Shown: one piece after another, positions 30,094 to 30,340 of the stretch
Numbering within the stretch: the first letter of the stretch is position 1
Layout: every line of letters begins with the position of its first letter
Assembly: GCA_965644265.1 (NCBI GenBank)
Contig: OZ286459.1
Coordinates: 124,186,001-124,249,664, forward strand
Length of the DNA stretch: 63,664 nucleotides
Reading direction: 5' to 3'
Source: Glycera tridactyla
Taxonomy: Eukaryota
Translations under genes and position numbers: made by a program
The notes under the pieces: generated by a model
Seen by the model: the letters and a program-made list of their open reading frames with translations, nothing else
The model's database searches: none
What the model was told of the DNA's origin: nothing

Positions 30094-30340
30094 GGCAACT
30101 GATGAGGCCCATATGGCCGAAACTCGGATGAACTGGAACCTGTTGCATATCTCAGGATCTGGTATAGCAGGTGTGCCTAAAAATGGGCAAGGCCACCTGT
30201 TGAGATGTCTCAAAGCGTTTAGTTGCACAAGGATCCACTAGATGGCGTCGAACTTGTTTCGACGCCACTGCCTAGCAACAAAATGCGACATCGTCTATGA
30301 CGTCATGACGTCCGTTCGTGACTTCAATCCGAGTCTTGCC
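30094..30340 (+). ncRNA. Type I hammerhead ribozyme with about 190 nt inserted in the stem III loop; predicted cleavage after GUC at 30335
   Basis: Stem I GGCAA (30094-98) pairs with TTGCC (30336-40). CTGATGA at 30099-105. Stem II GGCC/GGCC (30106-09/30115-18) with loop CATAT. GAAA at 30119-22. Stem III ACTCGGAT (30122-29) pairs with ATCCGAGT (30327-34), plus GAA/TTC after a one-base bulge. Triplet GTC at 30333-35. Confidence 0.85.
30235..30249 (+). promoter_or_regulatory. CTCF-like motif CCACTAGATGGCGTC
   Basis: Strong match to the CTCF core consensus. Motif match only. Confidence 0.3.

Follow-up and report, generated by a model that had tools for sequence, protein, structure and literature searches.

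A Penelope-like element (PLE) of Glycera tridactyla carries, close to its 3′ end, a hammerhead catalytic core that seems to have nothing to cut. In the window, by which we mean the whole stretch of 63,664 nucleotides that was analyzed, there is no compact or minimal hammerhead beside this core, and a search up to 30 nt from it yields no NUH site that has a partner for stem I, in line with the initial annotation, which had seen no GUH site nearby. The locus therefore poses a question: is the core what is left of a decayed ribozyme, or is it the catalytic half of a ribozyme whose substrate half lies farther downstream in the same RNA? Our analysis favors the second answer. The best explanation as a whole, to which we assign a probability of roughly three in four, is a type I hammerhead kept by selection, with a stem III insert of 127–553 nt that most likely holds a promoter module and with a predicted cut after C30335 in the window copy.

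The missing strand is found beyond a long insert. From position 30094 the window reads GGCAA-CTGATGA-GGCC-CATAT-GGCC-GAAA-CTCGGAT, and from position 30327 it reads ATCCGAGT-C-TTGCC. Together, these two stretches provide the core boxes CUGANGA and GAAA in the correct order, three helices with open ends at stem I, the G10.1–C11.1 and A15.1–U16.1 pairs and an NUH triplet (H not G), which is GUC with C17 at 30335. Stems I, II and III are 5, 4 and 8 bp long, with ACTCGGAT as the stem III partner of ATCCGAGT, and a U–U mismatch follows the 5-bp stem I. A scanner defined by core, stem II, stem III, an unpaired non-G and stem I returned a single split hammerhead on both strands of the 63.6-kb window, namely this one; both the letters and this sole match bear out the earlier proposal that the distal strand supplies an 8-bp stem III, the GUC and a 5-bp stem I. 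The MFE fold of 30090–30345 (−99.3 kcal/mol, z = −5.7 versus shuffles) contains the three-way junction, in agreement with the placement of the insert, 197 nt in length, in stem III of a type I hammerhead. An additional 3 bp that had been drawn after a bulge (GAA at 30130–30132 with TTC at 30323–30325) had to be abandoned, as these pairs are not kept in other copies, where position 30130 is G, A, C or T. By its sequence and computed structure, the window motif is a genuine type I hammerhead with its insert in stem III, for which cleavage is predicted (Table 1).

Table 1. Coordinates of the split hammerhead, its host element and related arrays (positions in the window unless a contig is given)
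Feature	Position	Strand	Basis or remark
Penelope-like element copy	26199–30356	+	5′-truncated at 26199; 3′ end inside masked run 30357–30489
Reverse transcriptase ORF, 596 aa	26821–28611	+	Pfam RVT_1, E = 9e-6
ORF with CX4CX2C linker and GIY-YIG endonuclease	28496–29542	+	Pfam GIY-YIG, E = 5e-6; frame differs from RT ORF
Stem I 5′ strand, GGCAA	30094–30098	+	Letters, scanner, MFE fold
Catalytic core box CUGAUGA (C3–A9)	30099–30105	+	Letters, scanner
Stem II hairpin GGCC-CAUAU-GGCC, 4 bp, 5-nt loop, G10.1–C11.1	30106–30118	+	Letters, fold
Core box GAAA (G12 A13 A14 A15.1)	30119–30122	+	Letters, scanner
Stem III 5′ strand, ACTCGGAT / ACUCGGAU	30122–30129	+	Letters, scanner, MFE fold
Insert closing stem III, 197 nt	30130–30326	+	Insert fold z = −7.1; CRE motifs
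TGACGTCA, then TGACGTC	30298–30305, then 30306–30312	.	CRE-type palindromes, 37 and 29 nt before cut site
Stem III 3′ strand, ATCCGAGT / AUCCGAGU	30327–30334	+	Letters, scanner, MFE fold
C17 of GUC triplet, unpaired	30335; predicted cleavage between 30335 and 30336	+	Motif geometry
Stem I 3′ strand, TTGCC (UUGCC), pairs with GGCAA	30336–30340	+	Letters, scanner, MFE fold
Sister-subfamily arrays	C1:52693218, 52699684, 52706150; C4:34625752/34632228; C4:76785098/76791559; C51:10955894/10962370		

The Rfam hammerhead models gave no match in the window, either at the gathering score or locally at E ≤ 10, and seven relatives were likewise without a hammerhead match at E ≤ 1. We attribute this to the long insert, and the initial annotation had anticipated that standard motif searches would pass such a motif by. 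For a given core, our own arithmetic (13 specified pairs plus a non-G within 600 nt downstream) puts the number of matches expected by chance at about 7e-6.

The annotated host, a PLE, is corroborated by ORFs for a reverse transcriptase (RT; RVT_1) and a GIY-YIG endonuclease (EN). Homologs of the RT ORF number in the thousands, at about 50% identity (3,399 at E ≤ 1e-10); most of them carry RVT_1 and HTH_animal and some carry GIY-YIG as well. In the EN-region alignment (A1), the linker cysteines upstream of EN, C181-x4-C186-xx-C189, are invariant. Because a zinc-finger-like linker of the form CX2-5CxxC has been described for Neptune and Nematis elements (Craig et al., PMC8557442), the linker motif, which Nematis shares, points to a Neptune-type PLE as the probable host. 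RT and EN occupy one ORF in relatives and two frames here, so the window copy is frameshifted and damaged. Paralog homology begins at 26199–26201, the truncation point of the window copy, and longer paralogs reach 2.3 kb further 5′. No upstream repeat of this copy was found in the window. The hammerhead starts about 550 nt past the stop codon of the element.

Other features of the element were seen along the way. The ORF at 26169–26768 is the tail of a longer ORF1 that full-length paralogs possess, open over 395 aa in L046, and the start codon of the window ORF belongs to flanking DNA, as it lies 30 nt before the truncation point. A long upstream ORF1 of 749–974 aa, with no Pfam match on record, is present in relatives L048, L050, L056, L057 and L058; in L048, ORF1 and the RT ORF overlap by 4 nt. 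Just past the ORF stop, a 40-nt stretch at 29571–29611 with the hairpin GACAC-CTTGA-GTGTC reaches a summed contig depth of about 10,000–20,000 in three runs of other organism labels, with contigs that diverge on both sides, and it thus seems to be common to a very abundant repeat in those runs. Among the loci examined, this stretch occurs only in copies of the window family.

The family to which the window copy belongs is large, with at least 779 candidate copies in the 2.04-Gb genome, the best 40 of which are 91–98% identical. Most of its copies are 5′-truncated, and tandem copies occur at a spacing of about 6.46 kb, both as expected of PLEs; one relative has both terminal repeats. The split hammerhead reading had been staked on other copies keeping the distal complementarity, and they do: both exact strands, spaced by 185–210 nt, are present in 48 family copies versus none in a reversed-pattern control, and the split layout recurs in related PLEs. 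The covariation of the stems that had been foreseen is a more mixed result. Within the family (30 copies, MFE structure), it is not significant, with the score reached by 47 of 500 shuffles, because the copies are 92–98% alike; across divergent PLEs, compensating changes are present, as set out below.

This genome also holds many other hammerheads. The core pattern CTGAYGAGN{9,15}CGAAAC has 3,669 matches genome-wide versus 90 for the reversed control, and the many different compensated stem II sequences among the core matches indicate that the genome contains many hammerhead families. Two further split hammerheads, unrelated to that of the window, lie in paralog flanks (L013:2366–2603 on the plus strand, and L025 on the reverse strand with its core at 419). 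Their stem III helices have 10 and 6 bp and their inserts 193 and 270 nt, respectively, with two TGACGTCA sites per insert. A sister subfamily forms head-to-tail arrays with a spacing of 6,461–6,476 nt, and each copy in these arrays has an intact hammerhead strand pair.

We collected DNA of more distant relatives from the loci around twelve RT homolog proteins and from 80 loci of a metagenome-contig scan with the EN-region alignment. These relatives come from about ten other assemblies and share 38–72% protein identity. In the 225 kb obtained by the metagenome-contig scan, the scanner found 27 strict split hammerheads, all of them on the ORF strand and 253–615 nt past the EN match, and it found none in reversed or complement-only controls of the same 225 kb. 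The protein-fetched contigs contain further split hammerheads, including one element with a split ribozyme in both terminal repeats. We also took every core on the ORF strand and sought its best distal partner. For 39 of 55 cores, the distal strand gives at least 10 bp (10–17 contiguous pairs around an unpaired non-G), versus 0 of 55 in reversed downstream sequence and 0 of 53 in upstream sequence, a result that upholds the earlier judgment that such pairing is unlikely to arise by chance. Nine loci with at least 800 nt downstream have no strict match; all nine carry the core, and each either lies on a contig that stops too early or departs from full pairing at one or two positions of the distal strand. 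The 35-nt core itself (30093–30128) is common to many repeats in three contig-type runs of other organism labels.

The matches fall into 24 hammerhead families with unalignable inserts of 127–553 nt. Stems I, II and III differ in sequence among these families with Watson–Crick compensation, which provides the compensating changes for the helices that the near-identical copies of a single family lack. G10.1–C11.1, which the scanner did not require, is invariant in all 24, and H17, for which the scanner required a non-G, is C in 13, A in 8 and U in 3. In the Neptune-like clade, stem III measures 6–12 bp, and the MFE fold keeps the hammerhead junction in 17 of the 24 families. Because the split layout recurs with different paired stems in relatives and is missing from the controls, it is not due to chance. 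As part of the overall explanation, and with the same likelihood of about three in four, we consider the split hammerhead to be maintained by selection in the Neptune-like clade of PLEs.

In addition to closing stem III, the insert appears to have a role as DNA. As RNA, the inserts are strongly structured in most of the 24 families. As DNA, 17 of the 24 insert families contain TGACGTCA, where shuffles predict 0.07, and the density of this motif is 36-fold higher inside the inserts than elsewhere in the same loci (3.0 versus 0.08 per kb). We take TGACGTCA to be the consensus cAMP-response element, bound by CREB/ATF factors. In 14 families, a box lies at a fixed 37–45 nt before H17, that is, before the cut site; six families have the TATA-like ATAAATAG there, five have TGACGACG, and three, among them the window family, have TGACGTCA. 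The TATA-like box is 39–45 nt before H17 in its six families, and the window family has none. The inserts thus hold conserved transcription-factor and core-promoter motifs of the kind found in Pol II promoters. PLE promoters, and the transcription start of a downstream copy, have been placed in the pLTR, meaning the terminal repeat of the upstream partner (PMC6765202, PMC2377424). The most likely role of the insert, judging from its motifs, is that of a regulatory or promoter module of the element; alternatively, the TGACGTCA palindrome may function in the RNA.

We also considered the insert as an intron and rejected this, since no family among the 24 combines a donor-like with an acceptor-like border. 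A separate observation concerns CCACTAGATGGCG at 30235–30268 inside the window insert, which resembles the CTCF core motif and which overlaps a 10-bp hairpin (about 30243–30268). At one pair of this hairpin (columns 168/179 of A2), subfamilies have G–C, G–U and A–U.

In the mechanism that we propose, insert structure and a stem III of 6–12 bp would bring the catalytic strand (30094–30129) to the substrate strand (30327–30340), and an RNA with both halves would fold and then cut itself after C30335. A stem III of this length would remove the instability to which the dimerization of other animal PLE hammerheads has been attributed (PMC4209133, PMC6765202). The DNA of the insert would act as a promoter module through its CRE-type TGACGTCA sites and the box about 40 nt before the cut site. 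With this module between its halves, the ribozyme would enclose a promoter at the 3′ end of every unit. Where units lie in a tandem or pLTR arrangement, the promoter would drive the next unit, and the complete ribozyme would be present only in transcripts that read through the whole terminal region. The cut would then serve to bring read-through or multimeric RNA down to the length of one unit, perhaps as a step toward circularization.

How do the ends of the units relate to the predicted cut? The initial annotation had placed the apparent element end about 20 nt after the cut, but this is where the masked N run (30357–30489) begins, and the distance was misjudged for that reason. Family homology in other copies, as taken from lengths and match marks, runs about 40–55 nt past 30356, so that copies of the window family end about 65–75 nt after the cut; in a relative with an exact repeat junction, the distance is 38 nt. 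At the other end, the 5′ terminus of one full-length copy lies 26 nt past the equivalent of the cut site. The observed 5′ ends of units also disagree with the TATA-like box, from whose position, 40 nt before the cut, transcription would be expected to begin about 10 nt before the cut. Because the unit ends differ from the cut site, the templates for integration must span it, and copies do not simply arise from RNA cut there. Templates of this kind agree with internal initiation of reverse transcription, as in another PLE (PMC11167929), and also with copying over slightly more than one turn of multimeric or re-ligated circular RNA, as proposed previously (PMC4209133).

In a more specific arrangement, the promoter and the ribozyme would be interlocked on purpose, and transcription would start within the stem III insert of the upstream repeat or immediately past it. 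A transcript that starts there would contain at most the substrate strand and would be unable to cleave its own 5′ end; the downstream repeat, when fully transcribed, would supply the complete ribozyme. We regard this arrangement as a tentative possibility, with the odds against it.

The unit ends are also an argument for a different account, namely that the conserved long-range RNA fold derives from a hammerhead but no longer cleaves usefully and is recognized by the RT of the element near a 3′ internal initiation site. Template RNAs that must extend 38–75 nt beyond the cut would be expected under this account. In another PLE, Anolis Poseidon, insertion in vitro did not depend on hammerhead cleavage, the cleavage itself required protein, and reads that end at the site were absent (PMC11167929); poor cleavage in vitro has also been described for metazoan PLE hammerheads (PMC4209133). 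However, all catalytic-core nucleotides, G10.1–C11.1 and the non-G at position 17 are retained in 24 otherwise unalignable families, which is hard to explain without selection for catalysis, and the stable stem III of 6–12 bp removes the reason that the literature gives for low activity of monomers. We therefore judge a non-cleaving fold to be unlikely.

The halves might alternatively act mainly between copies, the catalytic half of the downstream repeat working on a substrate strand at the 5′ end of the transcript. Transcription would then start in the upstream insert or just past it, the leader would be trimmed and both ends could be ligated into a unit-length circle. The position of the TATA-like box in six families, which predicts starts just before the substrate strand, would suit this scheme, as would the tandem arrays at about 6.46 kb, the element with a split ribozyme in both repeats and the circular-RNA model proposed earlier for PLEs (PMC4209133). 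Against it, each core has a local partner only 130–550 nt away, and the two are paired in the MFE fold for 17 of the 24 families; the window family, furthermore, lacks a TATA-like box. This makes action mainly between copies quite improbable. Finally, chance pairing beside a decayed core, or a formerly compact ribozyme broken up by an inserted sequence, would be in keeping with the absence of Rfam matches and with the single evolutionary instance that the window family represents, but the tiny expectation per core and the recurrence of the layout with different stems in relatives (39 of 55 cores and 27 strict matches, none in controls) refute it and leave it scarcely any probability.

The selected, self-cleaving split hammerhead that we favor is comparable to the minimal type I hammerheads of metazoan PLEs (Cervera and de la Pena 2014, PMC4209133; PMC6765202), with which it shares the class of host, the location in the terminal repeat or at the 3′ end, the type I topology, a short stem I, the canonical core and G10.1–C11.1. 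The difference lies in helix III. In the minimal motifs, helix III is absent or has 1–2 bp with a palindromic loop of 2–4 nt, and these ribozymes are thought to work as dimers (PMC4209133, PMC6765202), whereas the stem III of the split motif has 6–12 bp closed by 127–553 nt, so that a monomer can form. The window motif, with its 8-bp stem III closed by 197 nt, accordingly falls outside the definition of a minimal hammerhead. The statement in the initial annotation that known PLE hammerheads are minimal with a very short stem III agrees with both of these papers. In the searchable literature, we came across no PLE hammerhead with a long insert in stem III; the metazoan ones are described only with a very short stem III (PMC4209133, PMC6765202). 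Hammerheads with a large helix III are known from fungal and protist PLEs (PMC4209133); they are likewise stable as monomers because of this longer helix. They are described there as compact, with no long promoter-motif domain between the halves, and it is this description that sets them apart.

Separation of the two ribozyme strands within one transcript has a counterpart outside transposable elements. The discontinuous hammerhead that Martick and colleagues reportedly found in 2008 in mammalian CLEC2 3′ UTRs is said to have its insert in stem I and to reside in a cellular mRNA. As in the split PLE motif, its enzyme and substrate strands are hundreds of nucleotides apart. The PLE motif differs in having the insert in stem III, a retrotransposon as its host and hundreds of copies in many families, and the window motif is therefore not of the CLEC2 type.

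The combination of a promoter with a transcript-processing hammerhead also has parallels. Plant retrozyme LTRs (NbRZ1; PMC12029980) and the SINE-like elements of Schistosoma (PMC6765202) likewise pair a Pol II or internal promoter with such a ribozyme. In those elements, a contiguous ribozyme lies downstream of the promoter and the transcript loses its 5′ part by cleavage, whereas in the split motif the promoter-like motifs lie between the halves. In Naiad PLEs, 'HHR_core' and 'HHR_half_core' annotations mark 3′ core boxes that fit no stem or loop descriptor (Craig et al. 2021, PMC8557442). Those annotations came without a split-ribozyme interpretation and belong to a different PLE clade, with an N-terminal EN; the 'HHR_core' matches may be related to split hammerheads.

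What hammerheads do in animal PLEs is still described as unclear (PMC4209133, PMC6765202, PMC8557442). An entire clade with a ribozyme that is stable as a monomer and carries a long insert in stem III changes the picture of PLE hammerheads as poor cleavers that must dimerize. It also shows that descriptor and covariance-model searches under-count ribozymes, and the split layout may explain 'core only' matches in other PLE clades. Located at a fixed distance from the cut and flanked by the two halves, the CRE and TATA-like motifs would provide a concrete link between the start of transcription and RNA processing. Should the promoter and the ribozyme indeed be interlocked, these non-LTR-like elements would show an LTR-style division of labor into a promoter part, a shared part and a processing site, with ends that could be joined into unit-length circular templates. 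Such circles would explain the tandem, slightly more-than-unit copies that are typical of Penelope-like elements.
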